A stretch of DNA of 64,000 nt from Mobula birostris (GCF_030028105.1 NC_092374.1:90424491-90488490); one strand, 5' to 3'; shown: positions 25,740 through 63,316, counted from the stretch's first letter. Notes: a model not told the origin generated them from the sequence alone. Made by a program: numbers and translations.

Positions 25740-25950
25740 GCAAGAGGAATGAAAAGCGCACATTGCTGATTGACAGGAAGTATACAGTGCGCATGGTAAG
25801 TTCTCTTAGTGGAGGTCCTGTGTGAGCTGTTCTTAATTGGCTGGAAGTCCAGAAGCCGGAAGTTCGCGGAACGGCGTGTCTTTTCGTTTCACCCCTCCGT
25901 GGAGGTCGACTGCGCCATCCATGGTATCTGACTCTGGGGTTTGGGTTCTG
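25740..25950 (+). promoter_or_regulatory. CpG-enriched promoter / alternative first-exon region of the IgSF gene
   Basis: ETS-type caggaagt (25774) and ccggaagt (25856), attgg (25836), tgcgcatg (25788), TCT-like tcttttc (25879); donors ATG|gtaagt (25795) and CTG|gtgaga (25950). Confidence 0.55.
25921..25950 (+). CDS. IgSF gene, candidate coding exon 1 (MVSDSGVWVL); alternative is ATG-only exon end at 25793-25795
   Basis: ATG plus phase-0 donor gtgaga; compatible with phase-0 acceptor at 43592. Confidence 0.4.
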
Positions 25951-27160
25951 GTGAGAGGGGTTACAGCGGGATGGTCTGGGGCGCTAGGGAGGTTGTTGTG
26001 CAGGCGTGGAAACCGACAGGATGGGTCGTGTGGCTTTATACTTCCAGTCAAGATCAGGTTTCGGGTTTAACAGCCGTAAAACGTGGGATATATGAACTCC
26101 GAAGAATTTGCTGGAAAAACTTGGTGGGTCGGCTAGCACCTCTGGAATGAGAGAAACAGAGGGTGAAAGTCCCTGTTGCTCTCTCCCGTAACTTTCTTCT
26201 ATTGTACTTGGTAAGGACCAAGCGATTTAACAGTTTCAAAACCTCCTTGTAACGTAAAAATACTCCTGGAGTAGCACTGTCGTTATTCCGGAGCTCACTA
26301 CCTCCCACGATCTCGTCCGCGGTAAACTCGGAGGAGAAGTGTTCAAAATCAGTTTCGGCATCACTACCTATATGGCGCAAAATTTGAAGTTTCAGGCCAT
26401 GTTGGTGATGGGTGCGGCAAGTTCAGGAAACCTTCATCCACCAGAGGCCTGAAACCCACGTAGATAACTTCACTCACCTCAACTCTGATTACGTTCCACA
26501 ACCTACGGAATTCCATAACTCGTACTCTTAGTTATTTACTTATTTATCATTACATTGGCACAGATTGTCTTCTTTTGCACATTGGTTGTCAGTCTTTGTA
26601 GTTTTTCTGTATCTGCTTGTTCTGTGAATGCCTGCAAGAAAATGGACCTCAGGGTAGTATAGTATATGGTGACATATATATTCTTATAGGTCACATATGT
26701 TTGTCACTATATACTACCTCGAGATTCATTTACTCGAGTGTGTTTATTCTGAACTTTGAAGATGTCCTGAATTGGAAGGGTGCGAAAGGATACCCTCCAA
26801 GTCATCACTCACCTACAGATGTAACCTCTGCCCAGCATCCTCTTAACAATCAAATTCAAGGTTTATTCTTATGAACCAAAATTCATTGTTTTGTGGCAGC
26901 AGTCAGTGCAAAGATGTAAAATTACTATAAATTACAGAGATTAGTGCTGAAGAGAAATAACAAGGTAGTTTTCATGGAGTGTTCAGAAATCTGATGGCAG
27001 AGGGGCAGAAGATGTCCTTAAAACATCAAGTGAGGGTCTTAAAGCTCTTGTACTACTCCCATAATGGTAGATGCATGAAAAGCACATGTCCTGGATAGTG
27101 AGGGCCTTTAATTATAGATGCTGCCTTCTTGAATGTGTCCTTGATGGCAGAGAGACCTAA

Positions 27161-27870
27161 GGCTGATTTATACTTGTGTGTACTAGTTTACGCCGCAGCC
27201 TACGCAAGTGGGCTACGCCGTTGTGAGCATTTATACTTGTGCGTTGGTGTGTCTGTGTCGTTTTGCAATTCACCGCCCAAATGCTAGTTGGCAGTGGGGT
27301 TTCTATGCCACTGTGTTGAGTTTCTTCGTGTTGAAACTCAACACAAAGAAACTCAAACTTCAAACAATGGCAGTTGAAACTGAAGGAGGGTGAATTTTCT
27401 GTGCTTGTCCAGCCACTGAGAGACATGGACGAGGAAATGCATTTCAGATATTTTCGGATGTCAGCAGGTAGGTTTGACGATTTGGTTCATCGTCTCCAAC
27501 CATTTATTTCGCATCAGTGTATGTACAGTATACTCAGAGAATGGCAATCACCATTCGAGTTTTAGCTTCAGGTGGAAGTCAACAGGCTGTAGCAGTTAGC
27601 TACAAACTGGCATCAAGCTCAGGGTCCTCCGTAATTTTGGAGATCTGTAAAGCTTGATGGAAAGCATTGCAGTCAGAGTTCCTTCCCTGCCCTTCAGTTG
27701 CCCAATGGGACGCTATTGCAGCGTAGGAGGAAATGTGATGCTACCAAGCGGACCAATCATAGTTGTGGTCTGCGACGCCACGATGCATAGTTACATTTTG
27801 GGAGAGGTGTGCATAGGCTACAGCGTAGGGTTCGCGGCTACAGCGTACATTTGATGCATAAGTATAGACT
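27161..27870 (+). mobile_element. PIF/Harbinger non-autonomous element with transposase remnant
   Basis: TAA flank; TIR ggctgatttatacttg / cataagtatagact; [16 protein letters not shown] and [13 protein letters not shown]. Confidence 0.8.
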
Positions 27871-29255
27871 TTAAGCCCATGATGGAACTGGCTAAGTCTA
27901 CAGACCTCTGCAACTTTTTGCAATCCTGTGCACTAGGAATCCCATACCATGTGCTGATGGAAGCAGTCAGAATGCTCTCCACTATACATTTATAGAATGT
28001 TATTAGACGTTGATGATATACCAAATCTTGTTAAACTCCTAATGAATTGCCTAGAGTTGGGGGAGGTAAGGGAGGTCTTTAATAAATACCGTACTCCAAT
28101 GTTCACCACAAAGAGGATCTTGTAGCGCACAACAATTAACTGAGTGGATCAGTCATAAACAAGAGAAAATTTGCAGTTGCTGGAAGGCCAAGCAACACAC
28201 ACAAAGTGTTGGAGGAACTCAGCAGGCCAGGCAGCATCTATGGAAAACAATATAGTTGATGTTTCAGGCCAAGACTGAAGAGACTGCCCAAGACGTCGAC
28301 TATACTTTTTTTCCCACAGGTGCTGCCTGGCCAGCTGAGTTGCTCCAGCACTTTGTGTGTGCTGGGTGGATCAATCAAAAGCACATTTATTTGACTTGCT
28401 GCAAGGGAAGACTAGCGCTGCACAAGAGCCAGTGATAGCTTCAAAAAAAAAGTCACAACAGATAAAACAGTTCAAGGACAGGGTATATTCTGTTATTGTA
28501 TTTTGGCATTCTTCTAGTAATGCATCTGTGGGTCTACAATTTGTCAAGAACTTGGGCTCTATCAGCATAATGTTGCACAAAAACTATTAGTAAACCACTC
28601 TGGTACAATAAAGGTCCCATTTTGTTGCAGATAGAAATGCCATTTTGTTACTACAAATAAAGTGGATTTCCACATTCCATCTTTTTGTCATTTCATGACA
28701 GACTACATTTCACTAAATAACTACTTGAAACATACAGATATTTGGATATAAAGCAACGATGTTTAAAAACCCTACACAAAATTCCATTTTCACCTGTCCA
28801 CTTAAAAGACTAACAACCATTATTAAGCAACACACACACACAAAATGCTGGAGGAACTCAGCAGGCCAGGCATCATCTATGGAAAATAGCTCAGTGGACG
28901 TTTTGGGCCCGAGTCCCTTTGGCAGGACTGGAGAGAAAGAAAAAGATGAGAAAATTTAAAAGGTGGGGGGAGGGGAGAGAGAAACACAAGGTGATAGATG
29001 AAACCGGGAGGGGGAGAGATGAAGTAAAACGTTGAGAAGTTTACAGGGCTGGAGAAAGGGGAATCTCATAGGAGAAGATAGAAGGCCATGGAAGAAAGGA
29101 AATGGGGAGGAGCACCAGAGGGAAGTGATGGGCTGGCAAGGAGATAAGAGGGAGAAAATGGGATGGGGAATTGGGGGGGGTGGGGCATTACCAGAAGTTC
29201 GAGAGATTGATATTCATGACATCAAGTTGGAGGCTACCCAAATGGAATATATAGA

Positions 29256-29556
29256 GGCATCCATTAGTCCTGCGAGACCATGGATGTGCACCTGGAAAGT
29301 CTTCACTCTCCAGGGCGCAGGCCTGAGCAAGGTTGTATGGAAGACCAGCAGTTGCCCATGCTGCAAGTCTCCCCTCTCCATGACACCGATGTTGTTCAAG
29401 GGAAGGGCAAGGGCCGATACAGCTTGGCACCAGTGTCGACGCACTGTGTGGTTAAGTGCCTTGCTCAAGGACACAACACGCTGCCTCGGCTGGGACTCGA
29501 ACTCACGATCTTCAGATCACTAGTTGAATGCCTTAACCACCTGGCCACGTGCCCAC
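29256..29556 (-). mobile_element. tRNA-headed SINE family B (CORE-like centre)
   Basis: A box tggccaggtggttaa, B box gagttcgagtc, gtgtccttgagcaaggcacttaa; TSD tggaatata. Confidence 0.85.
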
Positions 29557-30418
29557 ACTGGAATATATGGTGTTCCTCCAACCTGAGTGTGGCCTTATCG
29601 AGACAGTAGAGGAGGCCATGGATTGACATATCAGAATGGGAATGAGAAGTGGAATTAAATGAGCGGCCACTGGGAGATCCTGCTTCTTCTGGCAGTAAGT
29701 GCTCGGCGAAATGGTCTCCTGATGTACGTTGGGTCTCACCAATATATAAAAAGCTGCACCAGACACAGTACATGTCCTCAACAGACTCACGGAGGAATTC
29801 TCGCCTCACCTGGAAGGACTGTTTGGGGCCCTGAATGGTAGTGACGAAGGAGGTGTAGCACTTGTTCCACTTGATCAGTGGGGAGGGAACGATCCCTGCG
29901 GAAAGCAGGAAGTGGGGGTGGGGGGGATGTGCTTGGAGGTGGGATAGCATTGGGGATGGTGGCAATTCCAGAGAGTTAGGCGCTGGACGCAGAGGCTGGT
30001 GGGGGTGGTAGATGAGGACAAGAGGAACCCTATCCCTGGTAGGGTGGGGTAAGAGCAGACATGCGTGAGATGGAAGAGATGAGGTTGAAGGCACAGTTGA
30101 TGGTGGAGGAAGGGAAACCTCATCCTGAGAGCAGATGCGGTGGAGAAGGAGGAATTGAGAGAAGGGGGTGGCATTTTCACAAGTAACAGGGTGGGAAGAG
30201 GTATTGCCGAGGTAGCAATGCGAGTCCATAATAGACATTAGTAGGTAAGCTGTTTCCAGAGATTGAGAATGGGGAGGGGGGTGTCGGAAATGGAACCGGT
30301 AAATTTGAGGGCAGGGTGGAAGTTGGAGGCAAAGTGATGAGCTCCTCATGGGAGCAGGAAACAGCACCAGTGCAGTCGTCGATGTTGCGTAGGAAAAATG
30401 GGGGCAGACACCACTGTA

Positions 30419-32982
30419 TTTTTTTTTATTTCAAAATATACTTTATTCAAAAATAAATATATACAATAAACCATTCAATAACTTTTCATCCTTTACATAC
30501 GTTTCCATTATAGTCAGTACATATCCGTATTTATAGCCACCCACGTGGCACTCCAGTAGTTCAGCTTACCATATCATTGTTGAGGGGTACACTCCCCGCC
30601 CACCGACCCCTCCCACTCCCACGGGTGGAGAAACCTATACTGTGGTCCTTCCCCACCGGGCCCTTGCGGTGGCTGCACCGAGTTTCAGTGCGTCCCTCAG
30701 CACGTACTCCTGCAACCGAGAATGTGCCAGTCGGCAGCATTCTCCCACGGACATCTCCATGTGCTGGTAGATCATCAAGTTTCGGGCTGACCAAAGAGTG
30801 TCTTTCACCGAGTTGATGATCTGCCAGCAGCACTGGATGTTGGTCTCCGTGTGCGTCCCCGGGAACAGCCCGTAGATCAGAGAGTCGTCTGTTACGCAGC
30901 TGCTGGGGATAAAACGTGACACTAGCCCGTCCATCCTCCTCCACACCCTCTTTGCGAACTGGCAGTGTGCAAAGAGGTGGGTCAAAGACCTCCTCACTGC
31001 AGTCCTCCCGTGGGCAGTGGGGTGCGGAGACGATGTTCCGAGCGTACAGGAGGGCTCTGACTGGGAGGGCCCCTCTCACCGCCAGCCAGGCGAGGTCTTG
31101 GTGCCTGTTGGTGAGATATGGCGATGAGGCATTTTGCCAGATGAACTGGACAGTCTGCTCAGGGAACCACCCCACTGTGTCCATCACGTCCTTCTCCTGC
31201 AGTGCCTGCAAGATACTACGTGCCGACCACTGCCTGATGGCTCTGTGGTCAAAGGCGTTCTCCTGGAAGAACTTTGCTATGTAGGACAGGTATGCCGGCA
31301 ACGACCAGCTGACTGGGGCGTTGCGCGGGAGTGGGACCAGACCCATCCTTCATAGCCAGGGTGACAGGTAGAACCTGGGCACATAGTGGTACTTGGTGCC
31401 CACATACCTGGGTTCTACACACAACCTGATGCAGCCACACACAAAGCTGGCCATCAGGGTGAGGGCGACATTGGGGACATTCTTGCCCCCGTTGTCCAGG
31501 GACTTGTGCATGACGGTCCGTCTCACCCGCTCCATCTTGGATCCCCAGATGAATCTGAAGACGGCTCGGGTGATTCCCAAGCTGTAGGAGCGGGGGACGG
31601 GCCAGACCTGCGCCAAGTACAGCAGCCCTGAGAGCACCTCACACCTGATGACCAGGTTCTTGCCCGTTATCGACAGGGAGCACCCTCCCCACAGTCCCAG
31701 TTTCTGTTTCACCTTGGCAGTCCGCTCCTGCCAGTTCGTGTTGCACGCCTCAGCCCCTCCGAACCAGATCCCCAACACCTTCATGTGGTCAGACCTGATG
31801 ATGAAGGGGACACTGGATCTGTAGTGCCAGTTGCCGAAGAGCATGGCTTCGCTTTTCGTGCGGTTGACCCTGGCCCCCGACGCTAGCTCGAACTGTTCAC
31901 AGGTGCCAATCAACCTGCGAACTGACCTCGGATCAGAGCAGAAGACGGTGACGTCGTCCATGTACAGGGAGGTTTTCACTTGGATCCCTCCACTGCCTGG
32001 CAGCGTCACCCCTCTTATGCCCTCATCCCTCCTGATGGCTTCCGCAAAGGGTTCTATGCAGCAGACAAACAAGACAGGGGAGGGGGGACAGCCCTGCCTG
32101 ACTCCAGACCTGATGGGGAAGCTGTCTGTTTCCCACCCGTTGACCTGGACTGCACTACGGATGTCTGTGTAGAGCAGTCTAATCCAATTCCAGATTCTCT
32201 CCCCAAATCCCATTTTGGAGAGCACGTCCGCCATGTACGTGTGCGATATTCTGTCGAAGGCTTTCTCCTGGTCCAAGTTGACCAGGCAGGTGTCCACCCC
32301 CCCCCCCCCCCCTGTCCTGCACGTAGGCGATGGTGTCCCTCAGCAGCGCGAGGCTGTCTGAGATCTTCCTGCCCGGTACAGCACAGGTTTGGTCTGGGTG
32401 GATCACCTGTCCTAGAGCAGACTTGACCCTGTTGGCGATAGCCTTGGACAGGATCTTGTAATCCACATTCAGGAGAGAGATGGGTCTCCAATTTCTAATG
32501 TCCTCCCTTTCCCCCTTCTGCTTGTAGATGAGGGTGATGATGCCCTTCCTCATGAACTCAGACATACTGCCGCCAGAAGCATAGCGTTGTACACTTCCAG
32601 CAGGTCTGGGCCCATCCAGTTCCACAGAGCCGAGTACAACTCAGCCGGTAAGCCGTCACTTCCGGGAGTCTTACCCAACCCAAAGGAACGGATGGAGCCT
32701 GTCAGCTCATCCAGGGTCAGTGGCTGATCCAGACTCTCCCGCTTGCCGTCGTCTAAGACCTGCGTGATAGACGACAAGAAGTTGCGGGAGGCTGTGGATT
32801 CTGTGGCCTTTTCATCGTACAGACCGGCATGGAAGGACTTGCAGATCCTCAGTATGTCAGTCTGTGAGGACGCGACTGAGCGGTCCTCTTCCTTAAGGTT
32901 GTGGATCACAGAGCTCCCCCGTGCACCTTTTGGAAGAAGAAGCGTGAGCACGTCTCGTCCTGCTCCACGGTTTGGACCGATT
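30419..32982 (-). mobile_element. Tx1-clade (L1 group) non-LTR retrotransposon, 5'-truncated ORF2
   Basis: NWRPISLLNVDYKILSK, LDQEKAFDRISH, GVRQGCP.SP, YMDDV, C-terminal CPREDC..HLFAHC knuckle; poly(A) at 30419; TSD ggcagaca(cca)ctgta; a few frameshifts and one stop. Confidence 0.93.
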
Positions 32983-34742
32983 GGCAGACACTGTAAGCTT
33001 GGAACATAGACTGTTCCGTGTAGCTGACAAAAAGGCAGGCATAGCTGGGACCGATGTGAGTGCCCATGGCTACACCTTTAGTTTGAAGGAAGTGGGGGGA
33101 AGAGATATAGAACTACTGTACTCCCATCCAACCTGTAGAAAAAGCCTGGGCCTGCTTACATTTACCCTGTCTATACACCTCATCATTTTGTTTATCTCTA
33201 TCAAATCACCTCTCAAATCCTCTACATTTTAATAAATTAAGATCCGACCTATTCACTCTTACCTTATAACTCAGGTAATCCAGATCCAGCAACATCCTTG
33301 TAAATTTTCCCTGTACACTTTCAACCTTATTTATATCCCTCCTGTAGGTAGGTGACGAAAACTGCACACAATACTCCAAACTAGGCCTCACCACCAAAAT
33401 CTTGTAGAATTTCAAAGTACCATCTCTGGTACTTAATACTGTATTTTCATTTATGAAGGCCAATGTGCTAAAAGCTTTCTTAACAACCCTATCTACCTGT
33501 GACACTACTTTTAATGAACTATGGACCTATATTCCTAGATCCAATCTACTGCACTCTGGCCCTACAGTTCACTGTGTAAGACTTGCCCTGGTTGGTCCTA
33601 CTGAAATGCAACACCTCTCAGTTGTTTGCATTAAAATCCATCTGCCATTTTTCAGCCATTTTCCAGCGGATCCAGATCCATCTGCAAGCCATGGTAGCCT
33701 TCCTCACTGTCCACTACACTGCCAATCTTGGTGTCATCTGCAAACTTGGTGATCCAGTTAACCACATTACCATCCAGATCATTGATATAGATGACAAACA
33801 ACAAAGGACCTAGCACCAATCCCTGCAGCACTCCTCTTGTCATAGGCCTCCAGTTAGAGAGGCATCCATCTACTACCATCCTCTGGTTTCTCCCACAAAG
33901 CCAATGTCTATCCCAATTTACTAACTCATCTTAAATGCAGAGAGTCTGAATCTTCTTAACCAACCTTCCATGCGCATTCCTTGTCAAAATGCCTTGCCTT
34001 CATCAACTTTTCTGGTAACTTCCTCAAAAAAGTCTTTAAGAACTACCACATACAACTTTACTTCAATCAGTCCATGTCTATCCAAATACTTACATATCCG
34101 GTCCCTTAGAATACCTTCCAATAACTTTCTCAGTGCTGATGTCAGGCTCACCAGCCTATAATTTCCTGGTTTATGTTTAGAGCCTTTCTTAAAGAATGCA
34201 ATAATATTGGCTATCCTCCATTCCTCTGGTACTTCTCCTGTCACTAAGGATAATTTAAGTATCTCTCCTGGGGCCCTGGCAATTTCTGTACTTACCCACA
34301 GGGTCCAAGGACCTCAGGACAGCAAACACCTTCTCCTCTGTAATCTGTATAGGGTCCATGACCTCACTGCTGCTTTGCCTCACTTTTATAGACCCTGTGT
34401 CCGTGTCCTGAGTAAATACAGGTGCAAAAAATTTATTTAAGATCTCCTCTATCTCTTCTGGTTCTGCACATAGATTATCATTCTTATCTCCCAGAAGACA
34501 AATTCTGTCCCTTATGATCAGTTTGCCCTTAATGTATCTGTAGAATTCCTCGGGATTCTCCTCCACGTTTGCTGCTAGGACAAACTCATGCCTTTTTTAG
34601 CCCTCCTGATTTCTTAAGTGTTCTCTTGCATTTCTCACACTCCATAAGCACCTCATTTGTTCCTACCTTCCTGTATCTGCTATGCACCTTTTTTTTCTTA
34701 ACCAGGGTCTCTATATCGCTTGAAAACCAAGGCTCTCTACAC

Positions 34743-35318: not shown

Positions 35319-35373
35319 CCCTGCACTTGTTAGCTTTTCTGACAGGCACATACAGGCTTTGTACTCTCAAATG

Positions 35374-41310: not shown

Positions 41311-41375
41311 TTGAGACTTAGTTATGTAAACTTGTGACTTAGTTGGGAAAATACAGGATGTCCACAATGTCAGGT

Positions 41376-41951: not shown

Positions 41952-43503
41952 CAGGTGTCCCCCACTTTTCGAACGTTCGCTTTACAAAACCTCACTGTTA
42001 CGAAAGACCTACATCAGTACCCCGTTTTCACTTTCAGAAGGTGTTTTCACTGTTAAGAAAAAAAAATCAGCGCGCGATAAAAGGCACCGCACGCCCTGAG
42101 CAGCCGCTCTCCCCCGGATTCTCGCCGGCGTTGCTTAAACGCGTGCCTGTGAGCAGCCGTTTGCAAGATGAGTTCCATGGTATCTGAAAAGCCTAGAAGA
42201 GCTCATAAGGGTGTTACACTTAGCGTAAAACTAGACATAATTAAGCGTTTGGATCGTGGTGAACGAAGTAAGGACAACGTGAGTTTGGCTTGTGGAAGCT
42301 GACGAACATGATGTTGAAGAGATTTTGGCATCCCATGACAGATGAAGAGCTGATGCAATTAGAAGAAAAAAGGATAACTATGGAAACCCAATGAGTAATG
42401 ATAAAGTACGACTTTAATTTTGAAAGGGTACATCAGTTTAGGGGATATTTGCAGGATAGTTTGAGTCCTCACAAAGAACTGTGTGATAGAAAAATGCGCG
42501 AGGCTCAGCAGTCAAGCAAGTCTTCCACATCAGCCACAGCAGACGACGAACCTCGACCTTCGACATCGAGGCGGACAGAGATAGCAGATGAGCTGCCTGC
42601 TCTAAAGGAAACAGACGATGATGAGATGACACCCCCGTGTCCCACCACCCCAACCCCCAGGCCACCGTCAGATACCGATTCGTGGAGAATGCAACGGTAG
42701 CTGGGAGGCACACAGCACTTCTTTAAGAAAAAAGCCGAAATAAACATGCTAATTAATTAGGTGCCACCGACACGTAATTGTCGGCCCAGATCAGAGACGA
42801 CGCAATCGGAAATCGGCACTGATCTGGGCTGACAATTACGTGCCGGGTGGCACCTAATTAATTAGCATGTTTTTTTTGGCTTTTTTCAAGATGTGCTGTG
42901 TGCCTCCTGGCTACCGCTGGACCCTTGCATGCTTCGCAGCAATGTGTCGCTTGGCGGCCTGGAGGGTGGGGGCCACTGCACCACCCCAACTCCGGTTCAG
43001 CCTAACACACCATCATCCATGTGCTTGGCGCTGTCTTCCGGATTCTCGTAAGTGATACTGCACTGTACATGCATTATTTCTACTTTATACAGGCTGTGTA
43101 TTTTTACGTGTTATTTGGTATGACTTGGCAGCTTCATAGCTTAAAGGTTACTGGAGAGCGCTTGCGCCATGTTTTTCCCACCTGCGCTTGCGTGAGATTT
43201 TCTGCCGACAGGGCTTGCGTGAGATTTTCACTACGGAGAAGAGTTCAGTAATGATTGTGGAAAAATATTTCTACTTTATATAGGCTGTGTATTTATCATA
43301 TCATTCCTGCTTTTACTATATGTTACTGTTACTTTAGGTTTTATGTGCTACTTGGCATGATTTGGTAGGTTATTTTTGGGTCTGTGAGCGCTCACAAATT
43401 TTTCCCATATAAATGAATGCTAATTGCTTCTTCACTTTACGACATTTCAGCTTACGAACCGTTTCATAGGTACACTGTACCTTCAGATGGTGGGGGAAAC
43501 CTG
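41952..43503 (+). mobile_element. Tigger/pogo-like DNA transposon, internally deleted
   Basis: TA|caggtgtccccc ... gggggaaacctg|TA; remnant TLSVKLDIIKRLDRGER (CENP-B-type HTH) near 42210. Confidence 0.85.
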
Positions 43504-43591
43504 TACCATGAACAGTAACTCATATTTGTGAATGTCTTTTTGAAGATAATTTCCTGCTGTTACATGATGTCCCTTGCCGCTTTAGTTTCAG

Positions 43592-43661
43592 GTCCAAGGT
43601 GTCCTCTTCTATGCTTCTCTTGCTGCAAAAGTGCTGTGTTTCAGTGCACTCGTCAGTGAAG
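43592..43661 (+). CDS. IgSF gene, signal-peptide exon (VQGVLFYASLAAKVLCFSALVSE)
   Basis: Acceptor tttcag|, donor GAAG|gtaaga; phase 0 to 1; hydrophobic; joins in frame to 45051. Confidence 0.65.
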
Positions 43662-45050: not shown

Positions 45051-45392
45051 CTACAGTTCAAACTATATGCACCCCAACACAGATTGCCACCCGGGCCAAT
45101 TGTGGGAGCACCACAGTACTTCCCTGCCCATTCACAGTTGAAGGAGAGGGAATGGAGGTAACCTGGCAGAAAAAGAAACCTCTGTTGGTGGTCTACATAT
45201 CAAACGATTTGCCGAAAAATCAGTACAGGGGCCGGACGACGATGCAACCAGGTTGGAACAAAATGGGAACAGCCAATCTGACTATCCACGACCTCAGAGT
45301 GGAAGACATGGGAACCTACGAATGCAACATCCGCCTGAATTCAAATTCCAGAAGCAAATCTTGCTCCACGGTAACCCTGAAGGTAGATCCAG
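45051..45392 (+). CDS. IgSF gene, V-set Ig domain exon 1 (B7/butyrophilin-like features)
   Basis: cacag| and CAG|gtaaga, phase 1-1; VLPC, VTWQK, YRGRT, ANLTIHDLRVEDMGTYEC, TVTLKV. Confidence 0.92.
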
Positions 45393-50345: not shown

Positions 50346-50384
50346 ACAACCTTGGAACCCAATTATACCCATGTCAGCAATTAA

Positions 50385-51074: not shown

Positions 51075-52170
51075 AAATCTATAGGACAGTAACTGCATAC
51101 AGGATCAACGAACAACAAACTCTGCAAACGCAAATAAAAATAAATATCAGTAAGTAACGAGAGAAAATAAAACAAGATTAAACAGTGCTTAATGTGAGAC
51201 CATCTGTTGTGGGAACACCAGAAATAGAATGAGTGTCATTATCCCCTTTTGTTCAAGAGCCTAATGGTTGAGGGGTAGTAACTGTTCTTGAACCCGGTGG
51301 TGCAAGTGCTGAGGCTCTTGTATCTTCTGCCTGGTGGCAGCAGCAAGAAAAGAGCTTGGCCTGGGTGGCAAGAATCTTTGATGATGGATGCTGTTTTTCT
51401 ACAGCAATGTTTCACGTAGATGTGCTCAGTGGTTGGGTGGACTTTACCCGTGATGTACTGGAGGATTTTCTGCTCAAAAAACATTGGTATTTCCATACCA
51501 GGGCTTATTTCAGCCACTCAGTACACGTCAACCACACATCTATAGAAGTTTATCAAGGTTTCTGATGACATGCCACATACTCCTGAGGAAATGATGGGTC
51601 CAGGACAGGTCCTCTGAGATAGTGACACCCAGCAATTTAAAGTTACTGACCCTCTCCACCTCTGACCTTCTGATGATTACTGGCTCATGGACCTCTGGTT
51701 TCCCTCTCCTGAAGTTTACAAGTAGTTCCTGCAGTTCCTTTGGCTTGTTAACATTGAGTGAGAGGTTGTTGTTATTAATCCGCTCAGCCAAATTATGAAT
51801 CTCCCTCCTGTATGCTGATTCATCACCCCACCCCCTTTGATACGGCCCACAACAGTGGTGTCATCAGCAAATTTGAATATGGCATGGAGCTGCACTTAGC
51901 CACACAACCATAGGTGTAAGCCCAGGGGCTAAGCACACATCCCTGTGGTGCTCCTGTGCTGATGGAGATTGCAGATGAGATGTTTTTGTCAATCCGAACT
52001 GACTGGTTTCTGCAAGTGCAGAAATCTGGGATCCAGTTGCACAAGGGTGTATTGCAGACCAGGTCTTGTAGTTTATTGATTAGTTTAGAGGAGAAGATGG
52101 TGTTAAATATTGAGCTGTAATTGACAAAGAGCATCCTGATGTGCGTATCTTTGCTGTCCAGGTGTTCCAG
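51075..52170 (-). mobile_element. Rex1-like LINE RT and 3' fragment
   Basis: [56 protein letters not shown]. Confidence 0.85.
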
Positions 52171-52174
52171 GATT

Positions 52175-53750
52175 AGACCATAAGATATAGGAGCAGAAGT
52201 AGGCCATTTGGCCCATCGCATCTGCTCCGCCATTCAATCATGGGCTGATCCAATTCTTCCAGTCATCCCCACTCCCCTGCTTTCACCCCATACCCTTTGA
52301 TGCCCTGGCTAATCAAGAACCTATCTATCTCTGCCTTAAATGCACCCAATGACTTGGCCTCCACAGCCGCTCGTGGCAACAAATTCCACAGGTTTATCAC
52401 CCTCTGACTAAAGTAATTTCTCTGCATCTTAGTTCTAAAAGGATGTCCTTCAATCCTGAAACTGTCCCTCTTGTCCTAGAATCCCCTACCATGGGAAATA
52501 ACTTTGCCATATCTAATCTGCTCAGGCCTTTAACAGTTGGAATGTTTCTATGAGATCCCCCCTCATTCTCCTAAACTCCAGGGAATACAGCCCAAGAGCT
52601 GCCAAACATTCCTCATACAGTAACCCTTTCATTCCTGGAAACAGTCTCATGAATTTTCTCTGAACCCTCTCCAATGTCAGTATATCCTTTCTAAAATAAG
52701 GAGCCCAAAACTGCACTTATAGAGCCTCAGCATCACATCCCTGCTCATATATTCTATACCTCTAGAAATGAGTGCTAACATTGCATTCACCTTCTTCACA
52801 ACAGACTCAACCTGGAGGTTAACCTTTAGGGTATCTTGCACAAGGACTTCCAAGTCCCTTTGCATCTCTGTATTTTGAATTCTCTCCCCATCTAAACAAT
52901 AGTCTGCCCATTTATTTCTTCCACCAAAGTGCATGGCCATACACTTTACAACATTGTATTTCATTTGCCACTTCTTTGCCCATTTCCCTGAACTATCTAA
53001 GTCTTTCTGCAGGCTCTCTGTTTCCTCAACACTACCCGCTCCTCCACCTATCTTTGTATCATCGGCAATTTAGCCACAAATCCATTAGTACCATAGTCCA
53101 AATCATTGACATACATCGTAAAAAGCAACGGTCCCAACACCGACCCCTGTGGAATCCACTGGTAACCGGCAACCAGCCAGAGTAGGATCCCTTTCTTCCC
53201 ACTCTCTGTTTTCTGCTGACCAGCCAATGCTCCACCCACGCTAGTAACTTCCCTGTAATTCCATGGGCTCTTATCTTGCTAAGCAGCCTCATGTGCGGCA
53301 CCTTGTCAGAGGCCTTCTGAAAATCCAAGTACGCCACATCTACTGCATCTCCTATGTCTACCCTGCTTGTAATTTCCTCAAAAAATTGCAGTAAGTTTAT
53401 CAAGCAGGATTTTCTTTTCAGGAAGCCATGCTGACTTTGGTCCATCTTGTCATGTGCCTCCAGTTACTCCGTAATCTCATACCTAACAATCAATTCCAAC
53501 AACTTCCCAACTACTGATGTCAGGCTAACAGGTCTATAGTTTCCTTTCTGCTGCCTCCTACCCTTCTTAAATAGTGGAGTAACATTTGCAATTTTCCAGT
53601 CATCCAGTACAATGCCAGAATCTGTCGATTCTTGAAGGATCATCATTAATGCCTCCACAGTCTCTCTAGCTAGTTTCTTGAGAACCCGAGGGTGAATTCA
53701 TTCAGGTCCAGATTTATCCACCCTCAGACCATTAAGCTTCCTGAGCACCT
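52175..53750 (-). mobile_element. CR1 LINE fragment (RT to 3' end)
   Basis: NYRPVSLTSVVGKLLE, SQHGFLKRKSC, YLDFQKASDKVPH, PQGSVLGPLLF. Confidence 0.9.
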
Positions 53751-54402
53751 CAGACATCCCACCCTGCAAAAACTCATTTCAGGGAGGTAGCACCATCAAT
53801 TTGCGGGAGACTCCCGGAACTTCCGGGAGAGGTGGGATGTCTGCAATAGAGTAGCTCCTTAGCAGCTAGCCAGCTAGTTTAAATAACGTTATCTATGCTA
53901 ATGAACGAATGACACCTGTTAAACTCACCTCAACACGTCTTTTACAGTCTTAACCCACCATGAGCAATAGAAAAGTCACTGTTGCAAACAATGCAGTGAG
54001 CAACATTGTCATTATTTTTGACCCCTATTAGGCAGGGGTACACTTTAGTGTAGTCTGGGGTGACGTACGTTTTATATTTTCTTTTTTTTTTTGGAACACT
54101 CTGCCATGGCGTGCTCTCGCTCTCTCGTGGTCGCTCTCGCGCTCTCACTTGCTTTCTCTCTCGCGCTCTTGCTTGCTTTCTCTCGCATGGTCTCTCTCTC
54201 GTGGTTGCTCTCGCGCTCTCACTTGCTTTCTCTCGCTTGCTCTCTCTTTCGTGGTTGCTCTTGTGCTCTCTCTTGCTTTCTCTCACTCGCTCGCTCTCAA
54301 AAAAATTGATTTCCGTGATATTGTATATAACTTGCAGGCATCAGGGAGCCACTCTTCATATGCAGGAGACTCCCGGAACTTCCGGGAGAGGTGGGCTGTC
54401 TG
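53751..54402 (-). mobile_element. hAT-like non-autonomous element with zinc-finger remnant and 6-bp TSD
   Basis: TIR cagacatcccacc / ggtgggctgtctg; TSD gcacct; AHCIVCNSDFSIAHGG on minus; third TIR copy ending at 53843; CT-rich tandem repeat 54110-54298. Confidence 0.65.
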
Positions 54403-54639
54403 GCACCTTCTCAATCGTAATTGAGTGAAGAGACAATGAAGGCGACATGTGCTTTGGTCGGCAAATTGGTGGGGATCCAAGTCTTCACTGAGACGGAAGC
54501 TGATATGCTTCAACAGCAGCCTCAAGACACTTCACTGTGGATGTAAGTGCCATTGGATAATTGCCATTGAGGCAAGGTTAAGATGGCGGCTGAGTACAAT
54601 GCTCCAATGGTCAACGTCTTCTGATAGACCACAAAACAA

Positions 54640-55330
54640 TTTATTTCACCTTCATGTCTCTTATGCCTGTTTTTCATCTTGAATGTGGTTCTGGAACTGT
54701 TGGAGCTTGTGATTTGCAGTCTGACGATTGTTTGGGACATCCAGCACTCTGCAGTCTCCAAGAGGATTCCGGGACGCAGAGGCAGCAAATGCAAGCCTCG
54801 TGGCGAGGAGGCTGTGAGCCGATATTTGACTCCATTTTGCTGATTAAAGCTTCCATGGTTCGCTGATTAAAATGATGAGGGAGATTGAAATATCAAGACT
54901 TAATTTCGCTGAGTAAAGCTTCCATTGTTCGCTGATTAAAGCGGCAAGGGAGATTGAAACATTGAGGCAAATGCAGGTGGTGAGCGCTGTCTGCCTGCTT
55001 TTTGATCGCTAATGGGATTGTTCTGATACTGCAGAGAGGAAACTGTGTGGCCTGCTACTGTGCCCAAAGTTTTCTGCGTTTTGGATATGGATTATGGACT
55101 TGTACTATGGCCAATGGACTTCTTTTTCTCAGTCTTATAGTTATTTAAATTTTCTGTTTTTCACCCGATCTTTCTCATCTTATTTTCCTGCGGAAAGGGG
55201 AATTTGGTGGTTGATGTTTATGTTTCTTTTTTTTTGTGCGGAGGAGGAGGGATTTGGGGGTTGATGATCTTTCTTGGTTTGGTGGCTATCTGGAGAAGAA
55301 GAATTTCAGAGTTGTTTCCTTTGATAGTAA
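54640..55330 (+). mobile_element. LINE-type 3'UTR remnant with internal ~65-bp tandem duplication
   Basis: gctgattaaagcttcca..gttcgctgattaaa twice; ends (tgaacctt)2. Confidence 0.45.
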
Positions 55331-56477
55331 ATGAACCTTTGAACCTTTAGCACAGATCATCAGTACTCCATCCCGACTGAATGCTTTCCTTGGATTCACT
55401 CTCCGTCATTTTCAGAATCTGAGACCAAAGGATCATCAGGGGACATGGGGATGAGCAATGGTTCCTCCCTGTTCTAGTGGCCAAAGTGAGCATAGAAGGC
55501 ATTAAGCTCATCTGTAAGTGAAGCTCTGCTCTTCCCTATGTCACCAGATTTAACTTTGTAGGAGTTTTTGGCATTCAAACCCTGCCACTCTTGCCGTGCA
55601 TCCCTCTTTAATTCCAGTCTACTCCGGAATCTCCACTTTGCCCGTGAGGTGGCTTTCCGGAGATCATACCTGCACCTCTTGTAGGATTTTTGATTTCCTT
55701 AGAACTCCTCCCACACTAAGGAGGAAAGTTTATGAGTATGAGATTAAACAAAACAGAAATGTAAGAATGGATAACTAGGTTGAGTCATAGAATCCTACAG
55801 CATGCAAGTAGGCCTTCAGCCCAATTCATGCATGCCAACTATGTTGGCCAGTGAGCTAGTCCCATCTGCCCACATTTGGCCCCTAGCCTGCTGAAACTCC
55901 TATTTGTGTACTTAACCAGATGGCTTTTAAATGTCGTTAATGTGCCATGACTTCTGGTGGCTCTTTCCGAATATGCACCACCCTCTGCGTGAAGAAGCAG
56001 CCCCTGATGTCCCTTCTAAATCTCCTGCTTCTGATCTTAAACCTGCTCCCTTTTAACAAAGTGACCTTTGGTCATTTTAAAAATGTGCCCCAGGAATCAG
56101 CAATAGGAAGCAAAATGGAGGCAGCTGGGGAAATTTGCAATCACCAAGAAAGTGGTGCTGAGCAAACTGTTAGAGCTACGTGCTGACTAGTCCAAGGATC
56201 CTGGTGAACTTCATCCTAGGGGGCTTGAAAGAAGTGGCTTAACACAATAGCTGAGGTACTAGTTCTGATTTTCCAGCATTCCCTAACTAATGAGAAGACT
56301 CCATTAAGATTTGAAAAATCAGAATCAGGTTTATTATCACCGACATGTGTGACATGTGTGTGAAATTTGTTAACTTAGCTGCAGCAGCAGTTCAATGCAA
56401 TACATAATATAAAAAGATTTAAAAATTATACAGTAAATACGTGTGTGTGTGTATATATATATATATATAATATCAAA

Positions 56478-56778
56478 GGCATCCGTTAGTCTTGTGAGAC
56501 CATGGATCTGCACCTGGAAAGTCTTCACTCTCCAGGGCGCAGGCCTGGGCAAGGTTGTATGGAAGACCAGCAGTTGCCCATGCTGCAAGTCTCCCCTCTC
56601 CACACCAATGTTGCCCAAGGGAAGGGCATTAGGACCCATACAGCTTGGCACCAGTGTCGTCACAGAGCACCGTGTGATTAAGTGCCTTGCTCAAGGACAC
56701 AACACGTTGCCTCGGCTGGGGCTCGAACTCACAACCTTCAGGTCGCTAGTCCAATGCCTCAACCACTTGGCCACGTGC
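56478..56778 (-). mobile_element. tRNA-headed SINE family B
   Basis: Highly similar to 41376-41683; (AT)n/(GT)n tail at ~56444-56470. Confidence 0.88.
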
Positions 56779-57459
56779 TTATATATTGAATAGATTAAAA
56801 ATAGTGCAAAAGTGGAAATAATATATGTTTTTAAAAAGTGAAGTAATGCTCATAGGTTCAATATCTATTTAGGAATTAGATGGCAGAGGGGAAGAAACTG
56901 TTCCTGAATCGCTGACTGTATGCTTTCAGGCTTCTGTACCTCCTTCCTGATGGTAACAACAAGAAGCAAATAGCAAAAGTAACCATTACTCAAAGAGAAG
57001 GGAAACCAAATTCTAATTAGTTTAACATCACGGAAAATATTAGAAACTCTTATTAAACTGTCATAGCACGGTACTTTGAAAAATTGAAGGTAACCACACG
57101 GAGTAAACATGGTTCCTTGAAACGGGATTCACATTAGAACACTTGACTGTTCTCTGAATAAATAAATAATACGCTGTGGATCAAGGGGGAACTGCCAGAT
57201 GAGGGTGGATGTACTATTCTTAGATTTCCAGAAGGCATTTAGTTAGGGGCTGTCTCAAAGATTACTGCAGAAAATAAAAGCTTGTGTAGGAGGGAGCATA
57301 TTAGAATGGTTAAAAGATGATCTTTATCTTTGCTTTTTCTGAATGTTTCCACAAATATTAATAAGAAAATTTGTTGAAGGTAAGTGTAGGTCCTGAATAA
57401 AATTGTTATTTTCCTTGTAGTTTTAACTTTGCTATGTATGTGCTTGAAATTTTGTAGAA

Positions 57460-57581
57460 TCAGCATCAGGTTTAATATCACCAGCGTATGTCATGAAATT
57501 TGTTTTTGTGACGGTGGTACAATGCAGTACCTGATAATGAAAACCGAATTACAGTAATTATATATGTATATAGTGTGAGCG

Positions 57582-57615
<34 letters not shown>

Positions 57616-58150
57616 GAGTTAATAAGTGGTGAGATAGTGTTTATGTATTAGATGTCCATTCAGAAATCAGATGGCAGAGGGGAAGAAGCTGTTCCTCAAA
57701 CATTGAGACTGTGCCTTCAGTCTCCTGAACCTCCTCCCTGATGGTAGTAATGAGAACAAGGCATGTCCTGGGTGATGGGGGGGTCCTTAATGATGGACGC
57801 CGCCTTTTTGAGGTGTCACTCCTTGAAGATGTCCTGGATGCTGGGGAGGCTAGTGCCCATGATGGAGCTGACTGAGTTTACAACTCTCTGTAGCTTATTT
57901 CGATCCTGTGCATTAGCAGCCCCCTCTCCCCACACGCAAGCACACACAACAGTGATGCAACCAGTTAGAATGCTCTCCATAGTACATCAGTAGATATTTG
58001 CGAGTGTCTTTGGTACCAAACCAAATCTCCTCGAACTCTTAAAGAAGCATAGCTACTGTCCTGACGCTTTTAGTAACTGCATCAACATGTTGGGCCTGGG
58101 ATAGATCCTCAGAGATGTTGACACCCAGAAACTTGGAATTGTTCACTCTT
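57460..58150 (-). mobile_element. Rex1-like 3' fragment containing (GC)6(AC)12 microsatellite
   Basis: atgatggacgccgcctttttgagg module; microsatellite at 57579-57614. Confidence 0.75.
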
Positions 58151-58874
58151 TCCACTTCTACCTATGCATGTAGTTGTTCAGTGAATTTGCCATTACTTAT
58201 GGTACAGTTGCTTCTGTATTTTTTTCTAGAAACCCTGTAGTTTTCAGTAGCATGTGTCTTGCCTCTTGAACCTGGCTATGTTATAGGTTAATTGTTAACA
58301 CTGGAATTTTTGGTTATCTTTAGTCTGAGTATGAAATGACTGTGACTACATTTTCCTTTCCTTTTGTTCTGTCAGCTGCTGCGTCCAGCCCATACCCCTC
58401 TGAGCCCCGCTCCTGCACCTACCTATCTAAGTGTTTGTTAACTGATACTGGTGTACCTGCCTCAGCCATTCATTCCATGTACTGCCCACCCCCAGTGAAA
58501 AGTTACCCCTCGAGTCCCTTTTGAATCTTTTCCCCTCTCAAGCTAAATCTGTGTCCACTTACCCAGGAGAAAAGACTTTTACCACCCTCCTTATCTAATT
58601 TTAAACACTTCTATAAGTTTTCTCCTTATTCTCCCACGTTCCAAAGAATAAAGACCTAGCCTTCCAACCTCTCCCTATATCGATTTCTTTTCAAAGTATT
58701 TTATGGACTTTCTTCTCAAAGCATAATTCTGTCTCTTGTATTTTGAGCAAGAGGAAAATATTACTGAAAGATTAGGATGTTTCAATAAAGAATAACAGGT
58801 CACATTGAAGGCAGTATTGGACATACCTAAAGTGCAGTGGTAAACCAGGTGAAACTCCTTGCAGGGTGAATATA

Positions 58875-58941
58875 CGGTACTGTACAAAAGTCTTAGGCCC
58901 ATATATATTGCTAGGGTGCCCAAGACTTTTGCACAGTACTG
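58875..58941. mobile_element. 67-bp Tc1-type MITE
   Basis: TA-flanked 23-bp TIRs cggtactgtacaaaagtcttagg / cccaagacttttgcacagtactg. Confidence 0.7.
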
Positions 58942-61000
58942 TATTTGTCGACATGGAGTGGAGGGTGAGATTCTAAATCTGGCGGGAGCAAAGGGTGTTG
59001 GGAATGCGAGGGTGGAATGCCGCGGGAGGGCTTTGGGACAGAGGAGTGCCAGGGGGCGGCACGTGTACAGACAGGCCCAACCTTGAGACACCAGGCAAGG
59101 TCATTTGAATCCAAACAGTTGGTTTATTGATTGTTACAGAGTGTCTCTCTGGTGCTTTCCGCTCCTTCGCCTCTTCCCAACCGTGATTCCCCTCTCCCTG
59201 CCGGGGGTGGTAATGGGGCCAAGATCCCACTGCCTATTAAATGTTCTTAATGGTGTGCACCTCAAATAGACTCCAGCAATCAAGTCCAGTTCCTGGCCTT
59301 CACGTGTGACCTGGCTACTAAGCCCAGCGGACCAGTTTCTGACAGGAGAAGGGGCAAAGGCAGGTTACCGACACCTTAAAACCTGTCGCTTTGAGCAGAT
59401 GGGGCTCATCAGCCATGGTTGGCAGCTGTTCTAGGAGAAGAAAAACTCTGATCTCAAATCTCCGCTGCCCTGCCCATGGGGAAGGCTTTGGGAGTAAAAC
59501 CCCAAGGGGAAAAGTCTGGAGCTGGGGTCCCTAATACAGTTCAACATTGAGTTCAATGCTGACTGGCAACTCCCGCAACGCCGCTGGTACCAAACTCTGC
59601 CGTTCCTTTGGGTTCATCAAATGTGTGAAGAAGGTGAGTTTGCTACGTGGGCAACAGCTTGCTCTCCATATCATACTGCCTAGGCTTGCATATCTAAACA
59701 GCTAGGACACAATATCCATGGCCAACTCTGACTGACCAAGGCCTCAAGAGTAGGTGGGAGAAGCTGAAGGGTATATGAGAGACAGTGAGTTTGTTACAGA
59801 GGAGTAAGTCGGGAAATGGCATTGTTTTGAGAGCTGGTATAGACCCTAGCTGTAATAATGTGCCTAAGACTTTTGCACAGTACTCTATGTTCACCAGCGT
59901 GCAGTAAACAAGTTGCATGATTTCATATCTAAGGACAGATTCATTAGAAGCCTTCAAAAGTCCATTGAATGGATATTTAGAGAGAGTAACAAAACAGTGA
60001 GATGGGGGCAAATGGAAGATTATTTGAAGGAGTCAGTGTATCTGCTGGCCTTCCTCAACCTCCGTACGATTAGTGGGGTAAAAGTGTACCTCCATGATGA
60101 ACATGTTTACTCGCAATCTCTGTGTTGGAGGGTGAGTACAGCATGAACTTTCATCCCTCAAAATTGCAATGGAAATTGATAGGATTGTTGCAAAGGTGGA
60201 GGGTGTTTCTTCGGGGGATTGAGTTCAAGAGCTATGAGATAATATTGCAGACCTATAAAGCCCTGGTTAGACAACATCTTGGAGTATCGTGTGCAGTTAT
60301 GGTTGCCTCATTATAGGAGGGATGTGGAGGCTTTAGAGAGGATGCAGAAGTGATTTACCTTGATGTTGCCTGCAGTACAGAGCAAGTCTTATGAGGATAG
60401 ATTGAATGAGCTTGGACTGAAGATGCATGGATAGAATGGACACCCGCATGACACAAGTGGCTAATACGAGATGGCATAATTTCAAGGTGATCAGCGGGAG
60501 GTACTGTATGTCAGAGGTGTTTTGTTTTAACACTGTGTGTGTGTAGATTGCTCTGCCAGGAATAGTGATACAGGCAGATACATTAGGCGCATATAAAAGA
60601 CCCATAGGCGCATGAATGTTTGGAAAATTGGAGGATTATGTGGGAGGATTATTTGCCGGCCGGTGGCAAAGTGCCATCTGCACTGGACTTTGAGGCGAGT
60701 GGTCCTGTGTTCGAATCTGGCCAGCTCCTTACACGCTTTCCAACCATGTTGGGTTGAGTGTCAAGCTAGCAACTTGGTCTGGTAAAAAGAAGCAGACAAA
60801 AAATGCTCCAGAACCAGCAAGGTCCCACCCAATGAGCCACAAAGCGTGGAAAGGAGCAACAACAACAAGAGACCTTGGGGCAGATGGATGAAAGGAAAAT
60901 GGAGGGTTACCTGGGAGGGAAGGAACTAAAGGTAGGTTGAAAGGTGGGCACAACATCGTGGGCATGTTGCTGTATAGTTATGTGTTCCTTTCATCCTTAG

Positions 61001-61327
61001 GTGAAAGAGATGTCTGGGCAAGCTCCACAGAGGTCACAGTAAGGGCAGGGGAAGATCTAATCCTCCACTTTTCCCACAATCTGAAATGTTTTACATCTAA
61101 TCTACACCTAACCTGGATGCAAGGCAGAAACTTGATTACTACCATGAGCATTGGCCAGGAGCCACCTGTAAAAGAGATCCCTGGTGTTTTGGCCAGCTAT
61201 GCAAGTGGAAATGCTACTCTGCTGCTAAAAAACATCTCAACTTCCCAAGCAGGAAACTACGCAAGTTGCTTCAAAGATTCCGCCTCCAAACAAGAATGCT
61301 GTGCAGTCTCAAATGTCATCGTTGCAG
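61001..61327 (+). CDS. IgSF gene, second V-like Ig exon with non-canonical cysteines
   Basis: ccttag| and CAG|gtaact, phase 1-1; VTVRAGEDLIL, LTWMQ, GNATLLLKNISTSQAGNY; H at the B-strand Cys position. Confidence 0.82.
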
Positions 61328-61378
61328 GTAACTTGGAATAGTCTTTTCTTCAGAATCGGGTTTATGATCACTGGCATT

Positions 61379-61927
61379 CACTCAGTGGCCACTCTATTAG
61401 GTGCCTCTTGTTGCCACCTTATTAAATTTGTGGTCTTCTGCTCCTGGAGCCCATCCACTTCAAGGTTCAACGTGTTGTGCATTCAGAGATGCTCTTCTGC
61501 ACACCACTGTTGTAACATTTGGCTATTTGAGTTACTGTCACCTTCCTGTCAGCTTGAATCAGTCCGACCATTCTCCTCTGACCTCTCTCATTAACAAGGC
61601 GTGTTCACCCCACAGAACTGCCGCTCACTGGTTGTTCTTCTGTGTGTTTTTCATACTATCCTCTGTAAAGTCTAGGAACTGCTATGTGTGAAAATCCCAG
61701 GAGGTCAGCAGTTTCTGAGACACTCAAACCCCGCTGTCTGAAACCAACAGTCATTCCACAGCCAAAGTCACTTAGATCACATTTCTTTCCCATTCTGATG
61801 ATTGGTCTGAACAACTGAACCTCTTGACCATGTTTGTATGCTTTTGTGCATAGAGTTGCTCCCACATGATTGGCCAATTAGACATTTGCATTAACGAGCA
61901 AATACCTAATAAAATGGCCACAGAATG
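61379..61927 (-). mobile_element. Non-autonomous Tc1-like element (second copy)
   Basis: TIR cactcagtggccactctattagg; MGKKCDLSDFGCGMTVG..LSVSETADLLGFS. Confidence 0.8.
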
Positions 61928-62469
61928 AATGTCAGAAAGTATGTTGTTTTGCAGCAGCAGTGTAGTGTAAGACAAAAAAAATACTGTGAGTTCCAATAAA
62001 AAAAATTATAAATAAATAGATAAGTAGATAAATAACTAGTGCAGAAAGAGGAATAGTCAGGTGGTGTTAAGGGTTCATCGACCATTCAGAAATCTGATGA
62101 CAGGGAAGATGTCTCTTCTCAACAGAGATGAGGAGGAATTTCTTTAGCCGGAAGCTGGTGAATCTGGAATTCATTGCCATGGACAGCAGTGGAGATCAAG
62201 TCATTGGGTGTATTTAAAGAGGAGGTTGGTAGTTTCTTGATTAATTAGGGTGTCAAAGATTAGGGGGATGAAGGCAGAAGAAGTTTAGAGGGATAATAAA
62301 TCAGCCATGATCGAGTGTTGGAGCAGACCCAATGGGCTGAATGGCCTAATTCTGTTTCCATGTGTAATAGAAGAAGCTGTTTCTAAAATGTTGCGTGTGA
62401 GTCTTCTGGCTCTTATACCTCTTCCCCCCCACCCCACCCCGATGGTAGTATTGGCAATAGTGATCATTC

Positions 62470-62935
62470 TCCATAAGACACAGGAGCAGAATTAGGCCAT
62501 CTGGTCCATCGAGTCTGCTCTGGCATTCAGTCAAGGCTGATCCTTTTTCTCCCCCTCCTCCTCAACCCCATTTCCGAGCCTTCTCCCCATAACCTTTGAT
62601 GCCATGTCCAATCAAGAACCTATCAATCTCCACCTTAAGTAAACCCAACAACCTGGCGTCCACATCTGCATGTGGCAACAAATTCCACAGATTTGCCACC
62701 CTTTGGCTAAAGAAATTTCTCCGCATCTTTGTTTTGAAAGGGCGCCCCTCTATCCTGAGGCTGTGCCCTTTTGTGCAGGAGTCAGTAGAGGCTACCCCAT
62801 TAAATATATTTAAGACACAGTTAGATAGATTTTTGCCTAAATTAAGTTATGTGGAAGAGGAAGGTAGGTGGAGCTGAGTCCATGACCAGATCAGACATGA
62901 TCTAATTGAATAGTAGAGCAGGCTCAACAGGCCAG
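62470..62935. mobile_element. CR1 3' fragments in opposite orientations
   Basis: Minus piece ~62470-62772 joined to plus piece ~62773-62935. Confidence 0.6.
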
Positions 62936-63218
62936 CTGGCCAACTCTTGCTCCTATTTTTTTCTGTTCTTACAAGGACTGGTTTGACCGGTACATCAGCA
63001 CTGGGAAGATGGGTACATGTTTGGGGAGTGGGGGGGAATAGATAGCAGAGTGGGAGGGGTCAAAAGATTCCTGGTGTCTAATGGGGGGGCACTGGGGTGC
63101 TCTCCAGGAGATAAAGCCATGCTTCTGCGTCGATTCTCTGTAAATGGGTAGAGTGGAAATGGGGAACTCAGAATTTAAAGTGCCTGAGTTTTCATCCAGT
63201 CTTTCTTCTCTCCAACAG

Positions 63219-63316
63219 AGACCTGGAGCGGCACAGAACCAACTCTGATTCACAGTCACTACATACTAACCTCACTACTGGTGGTTCTGTTCGGCTGTGT
63301 GATGACTCTGTCATAA
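63219..63316 (+). CDS. IgSF gene, terminal exon (ETWSGTEPTLIHSHYILTSLLVVLFGCVMTLS*), GPI-signal-like
   Basis: Acceptor ctttcttctctccaacag|; phase 1; hydrophobic stretch runs to TAA at 63314-63316. Confidence 0.7.

Follow-up and report, generated by a model that had tools for sequence, protein, structure and literature searches.

We analysed a 64,000-nt window of the genome of the manta ray Mobula birostris (GCF_030028105.1, NC_092374.1:90424491-90488490), from whose first letter all coordinates below are counted. The window holds one real, transcribed gene, which lies on the + strand, spans more than 37 kb, and encodes a protein with two immunoglobulin (Ig) domains. Its 5' exons lie at 21.6-25.9 kb (or at about 43.0 kb), and its 3' untranslated region (UTR) reaches past 63.5 kb. 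Downstream of the first exon, the coding part comprises a leader (signal-peptide) exon at 43586-43661 (76 nt, phase 0 to 1, with a strong donor, identical to residues 14-38 of protein P0161), the V-set exon of domain 1 at 45051-45392 (342 nt), the V-like exon of domain 2 at 61001-61327 (327 nt), and a phase-compatible terminal exon at 63219-63316 (98 nt), which ends with the stop codon TAA at 63314-63316. The V, V-like, and tail exons have GT-AG borders in phase 1-1. An initial annotation, made from the sequence alone, had assembled these three exons into one gene and proposed the layout signal peptide, V domain, V-like domain, short stalk, and hydrophobic end with no cytoplasmic tail. This layout, with a putative signal peptide, is supported by our analysis, and the hydrophobic end is kept in every full-length orthologue. 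The three N-glycosylation sequons it had listed are all present: NLT in domain 1, NAT and NIS in domain 2 (residues 102, 211, and 218, respectively, of a 281-aa model).

Four RNA runs (X1, X2, X4, and X5, the first three from organism A) were mapped to positions 58000-63999, the region of exons 4 and 5. The GT-AG joint between 61327 and 63219, which skips 1,891 nt, was found in all four, in one contig per run and at depths of 252-728; the exon at 63219 is thus used. Immediately before position 60999, X2 and X5 carry 30 letters that are the final bases of the V exon, i.e., the V exon is joined to 61001. Because of these two joints, the V, V-like, and tail exons must lie on one transcript, and the two V exons do not come from different genes. 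The intron upstream of exon 4 was near-empty in the RNA contigs. At the other end, contigs ran unspliced through the stop codon into the 3' UTR, to 63387 (X1), 63449 (X4), and 63553 (X5), and in the four runs no listed joint within 58000-63999 led out of exon 5 to further coding exons that could add a transmembrane segment and a cytoplasmic tail. Exon 5 is terminal. The positions at which X5 differs from the window correspond to the substitutions T133M, S220T, A228T, and S268L of Mobula hypostoma, and therefore two species express the same structure. When the V exon was used as a query, the share of sampled words in X1, X2, and X4 equalled the exon fraction. With exon 4 as the query, X1 and X4 again matched it (0.59 versus 0.57 and 0.21 versus 0.22), and X2 was higher (0.38).

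The 3' UTR is contiguous with the stop codon from 63317 to 63553, with weaker contigs to ~63930. A signal scan found no AATAAA or ATTAAA between the stop codon and the window end (63317-64000), and the 3' UTR probably continues beyond the window. Two further observations concern the introns of this region. In X5 only, one contig (depth 105, with 30 nt on its short side) joins a cryptic exon at ~59560-59633 on the + strand, ending in GTGAAGAAG before the donor gtgagt, to 61001 with GT-AG borders. It is a possible minor alternative exon within a repeat-rich intron. Contig depth reached the thousands, with many odd joints, in the intron stretches 58800-59600 and 61400-62800, a pattern typical of transcribed interspersed repeats and not of the gene.

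Public annotation agrees with the RNA joints. The RefSeq protein XP_072115571.1 of M. birostris (293 aa, 5'-partial, named "coxsackievirus and adenovirus receptor-like, partial") is, over residues 14-293, 100% identical to the product of exons 2-5, and its coding sequence (CDS) spans 20,308 nt, i.e., 43009-63316. The M. hypostoma protein XP_062904810.1 (LOC134346906, 281 aa) matches the window model at 273 of 281 residues, with eight differences and no gaps. The gene model is right from the leader exon onward. A tblastn search of the window with 163 collected proteins, which would have revealed extra Ig exons, returned only the gene's own exons and a 5' exon at 21.6 kb described below.

Domain 1 matches the Pfam V-set profile with E=1.4e-12. 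In a search of solved structures with a profile of the family, the best matches were both V domains of CD276 (B7-H3), at ~6e-9 each, followed by JAML, pIgR, BTN2A1, VTCN1, BTN3A, and PD-L1. On these profile scores, domain 1 is classed as a V domain of B7/butyrophilin type, closest to CD276, in agreement with the initial annotation.

The second domain is more diverged. The window exon alone gave a weak Ig match (V-set, E=0.056), and Mobula has lost the two canonical cysteines (LHFS and YASC at their sites). When the family is considered, five of ten members match Pfam V-set best, with E-values down to 1.6e-6, and a domain-2 profile aligns over its full length to the V domains of CD276, MOG, BTN2A1, and BTN1A1 (E ~1e-2 to 1e-5). 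An AlphaFold2 (AF2) model (pLDDT 80) has nine strands in domain 2, and the best matches of the whole model are V-V tandems: single-chain variable fragments, JAML, pIgR, and IGSF3. The look-alikes of domain 2 identified with ESM are also V-set clusters. Domain 2 is a divergent V-set and not an IgC domain; Pfam, profile, fold, and ESM results agree on this, and the earlier description of the domain as V-like stands. Cysteines 170, 230, and 241 are invariant in the family, as is Cys44 of domain 1. Fold searches against Swiss-Prot models, the PDB, and AlphaFold database clusters returned only generic two-Ig matches, with template-modelling scores <0.5.

The window protein ends in V-A-E-T-W-S-G-T, followed by the eight-residue spacer E-P-T-L-I-H-S-H and by 18 uncharged, mostly hydrophobic residues before the stop codon. 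This confirms the WSGTE stalk and the tail-less 18-residue end noted earlier, the 18 residues being those after the last charged one. Such a succession of small residues, polar spacer, and hydrophobic terminus is the textbook layout of a signal for attachment of glycosylphosphatidylinositol (GPI), and S-G-T in the stalk of the tail exon is a candidate omega site. We checked nine family members against these rules: the tripeptide is S-G-T or S-G-A, except for N-G-T in Stegostoma, the spacer has 8-10 residues, and the hydrophobic run 13-18. On visual inspection, the other members' tails follow this pattern as well. Most members have S-G-A or S-G-T; carpet sharks have N-G-T or N-S-T, and Pristis has S-D-M, which offers a poorer omega+2 residue. 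The hydrophobic run has 13-14 residues in sharks and 16-18 in rays (mean hydropathy 2.1-3.2), and in all full-length orthologues it either ends the protein or is followed by two residues (Rhincodon). Judged by this pattern, the tail of the family is likely a signal of the GPI-attachment type. One Heptranchias isoform has another sequence in place of the tail and may represent a mis-splicing product or a soluble form.

An exhaustive search with the V exon gathered orthologues of the same layout, annotated in 13 other shark and ray species, mostly as "uncharacterized protein" and ~265-315 aa long. Among rays they occur in M. hypostoma, Hypanus sabinus, Hemitrygon akajei, and Pristis pectinata (whose model has an N-terminal extension), and among sharks in Heptranchias perlo, Heterodontus francisci, Stegostoma tigrinum, Rhincodon typus, Chiloscyllium punctatum, Hemiscyllium ocellatum, Cetorhinus maximus, and Chiloscyllium plagiosum (a shorter model of 201 aa). 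The initial annotation had recognised no orthologue; a shark and ray family exists and is already modelled in RefSeq. Outside sharks and rays, the searches returned only generic V-domain matches to multi-V fish, turtle, and lamprey proteins. For domain 2 and the tail, a scan of all collected proteins with a local hidden Markov model yielded nothing beyond weak, generic Ig matches outside the family, and a region-restricted database search found rays only. None of these three results is proof of absence. Literature searches found no description of the family. It is an apparently lineage-restricted, fast-evolving set of B7-like V-V proteins with a GPI-type end, already present in public annotation. 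Lineage-specific genes of the immunoglobulin superfamily (IgSF) are common in fishes.

For a nucleotide comparison we used the DNA of the Pristis locus, which is collinear with the window through ~18 conserved blocks and has V, V-like, and tail exons of identical length (342, 327, and 98 nt). Identity between ray and shark proteins is 27-37%. The gene evolves fast, like many immune surface molecules. In Pristis, a separate gene encoding a 263-aa protein with SPRY and SOCS-box domains lies upstream on the opposite strand (383-2620 of locus L001); no counterpart of it was found in the manta window.

The 5' end is where the models diverge. In Hypanus and Pristis the protein starts inside the leader exon (MLLLIQVLC... 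and MRYSILLLLC..., respectively). From this ancestral ATG to the end of the leader exon there are 49 nt in Pristis DNA, 49 nt in Hypanus (deduced from the protein), and 51 nt in the window. Alignment with Hypanus requires a change of frame midway through the manta leader exon: its first half matches as FRSKVSSSMLLL and its second half, in a different frame, as VLCFSALV. The leader of the M. hypostoma protein is read in the same shifted frame as that of the window. In this frame the leader is hydrophobic (VLFYASLAAKVLCFSALV, then SEA/T), and AF2 draws residues 5-30 as a helix. A scan for a signal peptide encoded in a single exon upstream of the V exon gave no good candidate, and the X1 contig extends 74 nt upstream of the leader exon.

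Candidates for the first exon of the manta gene lie further upstream. An ATG at 25793-25795, with which a 5' exon ends (cgcATG directly before the donor gtaagt), is in frame, gives 281 aa, and fits the RefSeq model of M. hypostoma. This model (P0156) begins with MFQVQG, and only the ATG at 25793-25795 reproduces M followed by FQVQG...; its CDS spans 36,779 nt, versus 37,524 nt for 25793-63316. A weak CpG-rich zone at ~24-26.5 kb (CpG observed/expected 0.64-1.08) surrounds this ATG and fits a promoter. The initial annotation had given 25793 as the start of the gene, and this coordinate fits the M. hypostoma ATG; its proposed first exon at 25921-25950 (+ strand; MVSDSGVWVL before gtgaga) found no support. 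That exon is in frame with either leader acceptor, giving 288 aa with the one at 43592 or 290 aa with the one at 43586, but no database model uses it, nor does any RNA evidence from the reads mapped to 58000-63999. The acceptor at 43592, needed for the claimed 288 aa, scored best in our scan, and was rejected given that both RefSeq models imply 43586. Pristis appears to use the downstream one of these two sites.

Two other 5' exons were found on the + strand. At 21600-21646, 4 kb upstream of 25793, tblastn with residues 1-33 of protein P0151 (E ~1e-4 to 2e-6) identified an alternative exon (MKGLHCCQKHQGHDW plus CA before gtaagt), of which 13 of 15 residues match the first coding exon of isoform X1 of Hypanus. 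It is conserved among stingray-type rays; no counterpart was found at the collinear position in Pristis. The 5' exon of XP_072115571.1 lies at 43009-43047 (TIIHVLGAVFRIL before gtaagt). The protein is marked partial because this exon has no in-frame ATG and is preceded by a TAA at 43003. We infer which start codon mantas use, and in the 281-aa model it would be the ATG at 25793-25795.

These results are best explained, with reasonable probability, by a real protein of ~281 aa that consists of a signal peptide, a B7-type V domain, a diverged V-set domain, and a C-terminal signal of GPI type. The precursor would enter the endoplasmic reticulum, where a GPI lipid would take the place of its hydrophobic end after cleavage at S-G-T. 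The glycosylated two-domain ectodomain would then sit on the outer leaflet of the membrane, with no cytoplasmic part. The membrane-distal B7-like V domain may bind a partner on another cell, in the role of a ligand, counter-receptor, or adhesion molecule, and signalling might proceed via this partner or via raft co-receptors. Such a protein could also be shed by a phospholipase. The roles proposed earlier, i.e., immune ligand, decoy, or adhesion molecule, are putative. A broader reading, which we put forward tentatively, is that of a ligand family restricted to sharks and rays, built as B7-like V-V-GPI rather than as V, C, and transmembrane segment, with no counterpart detected in bony vertebrates and forming, with putative single-V genes nearby, a local cluster of lipid-anchored B7-like molecules. 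The manta gene might then have survived the frameshift of its leader through a new exon, with a single ATG codon, 18 kb upstream.

Several observations weigh against a functional GPI-anchored protein in mantas. After the net change of +2 nt, the ancestral ATG (43611-43613) is out of frame in Mobula and opens an open reading frame (ORF) of 53 codons that ends within the V exon. When spliced to 43586, the exon at 21600-21646 gives an ORF of only 77 codons, out of frame with the V exon, and the RefSeq model for the M. birostris genome has no start codon. The ratio of non-synonymous to synonymous substitution rates (dN/dS) between Mobula and Pristis is high (0.65 overall, 0.76 in the V domain, 0.57 in domain 2, and 0.59 in the tail). 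The GPI reading itself rests on a rule-of-thumb check of the sequence, and the hydrophobic end of rays, with its 16-18 residues, could conceivably remain as a tail-less membrane anchor. The first of these points suggest an alternative: in Mobula the gene may be transcribed but translationally crippled by the change in the leader, being either a young unitary pseudogene or a gene with a weak or non-AUG start. In its favour are the frame switch relative to Hypanus and Pristis, the partial RefSeq CDS, the ORFs of only 53, 77, and 71 codons opened by the ancestral ATG, the exon at 21600-21646, and the ATG of the RefSeq M. birostris 5' exon, respectively, and the pyrimidine found at position -3 of either in-frame ATG candidate. 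The two Mobula species also differ at eight of 281 residues, with three non-synonymous and one synonymous change in exons 4 and 5. Yet, in neither Mobula species is the frame of 255 codons in exons 3-5 interrupted, and the mRNA is abundant in the contigs (depth 252-728), although a stop codon in exon 3 would be expected to invite nonsense-mediated decay. The ATG before gt at 25793-25795 is in frame and is used by the M. hypostoma model, the leader in its new frame is still hydrophobic and signal-like, and the divergence of the Mobula pair is, by a rough count, lower at non-synonymous sites (~1.3% per site) than in intron and UTR (~2.2%). On balance we find a crippled gene unlikely, and prefer a translated protein.

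Two other alternatives concern the nature of this protein. It could be a tail-less type I membrane protein, in which the C-terminal hydrophobic stretch is left uncleaved and anchors the protein without a cytoplasmic tail. The 16-18 uncharged residues of rays (hydropathy 2.1-3.2) are near the minimum for a membrane span, and AF2 draws residues 258-280 as one helix. However, the run of sharks, with only 13-14 residues, is too short for a membrane-spanning helix, the small tripeptide (mostly SG[A/T]) found 8-10 residues upstream throughout the family would be needless for a plain anchor, and in no full-length member is the run followed by more than two residues. We regard an uncleaved anchor as improbable. 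The other alternative takes the RefSeq name literally and makes the gene an orthologue or a member of the CXADR lineage (the CTX/CAR/JAM group). RefSeq gives such names in M. birostris, Hypanus, and Hemitrygon, and the highest sequence identity in the fold search (22%) was that to CXADR and CLMP. Most shark orthologues, however, are named just "uncharacterized", and the manta protein has neither a membrane span nor a cytoplasmic tail, while its domain 2 is V-like and not C2. CAR is moreover absent among the 60 best profile matches, where CD276, JAML, pIgR, and the butyrophilins rank first. This makes membership of the CXADR group very improbable, and the label "coxsackievirus and adenovirus receptor-like" misleads.

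Elsewhere in the window we noted few features. A long C/T-rich low-complexity tract at 10000-12100 (GC 0.59, GC skew -0.74) contains open frames of 460-549 codons rich in proline, serine, and leucine, which are almost certainly not genes. From our own reading of the ORF listing, an ORF at 2100-2860 on the + strand (...HGGGCIMLWGCF...) is presumably the remnant of a Tc1/mariner-type transposase, and one at 51800-53700 on the - strand resembles what we take to be the remnant of a long interspersed nuclear element (LINE) reverse transcriptase.

The gene adds a conserved, unstudied surface molecule to the immune or adhesion repertoire of cartilaginous fishes, if the GPI-anchored protein that we favour is correct. 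It would also provide a testable case, both for the attachment of a B7-type V domain through GPI and for whether a start codon is rescued or lost when the leader shifts frame. It opens no long-standing question, and the gene is already modelled in public annotation.

By descent, as far as profile matches can tell, the V domains have their nearest relatives in the B7/butyrophilin group. They share with it the V-set type of domain 1 (with matches to CD276, BTN2A1, VTCN1, and PD-L1), the phase 1-1 domain exons, and the weak but full-length alignment of domain 2 to the V domains of CD276, MOG, and butyrophilins. In contrast to B7 proteins, the manta-type protein has no IgC domain and no transmembrane segment with cytoplasmic tail; butyrophilins differ from it in these same features and in the B30.2/SPRY domain, which is absent from the manta CDS. 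The V-V family, unlike the B7/butyrophilin group, was found in sharks and rays only. JAML also has tandem V-type domains, gave the best two-domain profile match (E=1.7e-12, in two stretches), and is among the top fold matches, but it spans the membrane and signals through a cytoplasmic tail, and its identity to the manta protein is 14-17%. CXADR and CLMP resemble the latter in having a two-Ig ectodomain of similar length, aligned by fold; CXADR differs in its V-C2 architecture, its transmembrane segment, and its long tail.

GPI-anchored members of the IgSF include Thy-1, CD48, CD58, the IgLONs, and CEACAM5-8. CD160 is described as mainly GPI-linked (PMC6127213). The manta protein resembles such molecules in its putative signal peptide, Ig domains, small residues, polar spacer, and hydrophobic end, and in the lack of a cytoplasmic part. 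No sequence kinship with them was seen past the Ig fold, its domain pair is V-V and not a single V or V-C2, and its anchoring is predicted. By analogy, it would work most like the GPI-anchored ligands and adhesion molecules of the IgSF, i.e., CD48, CD58, CD160, Thy-1, the IgLONs, and the CEACAMs.

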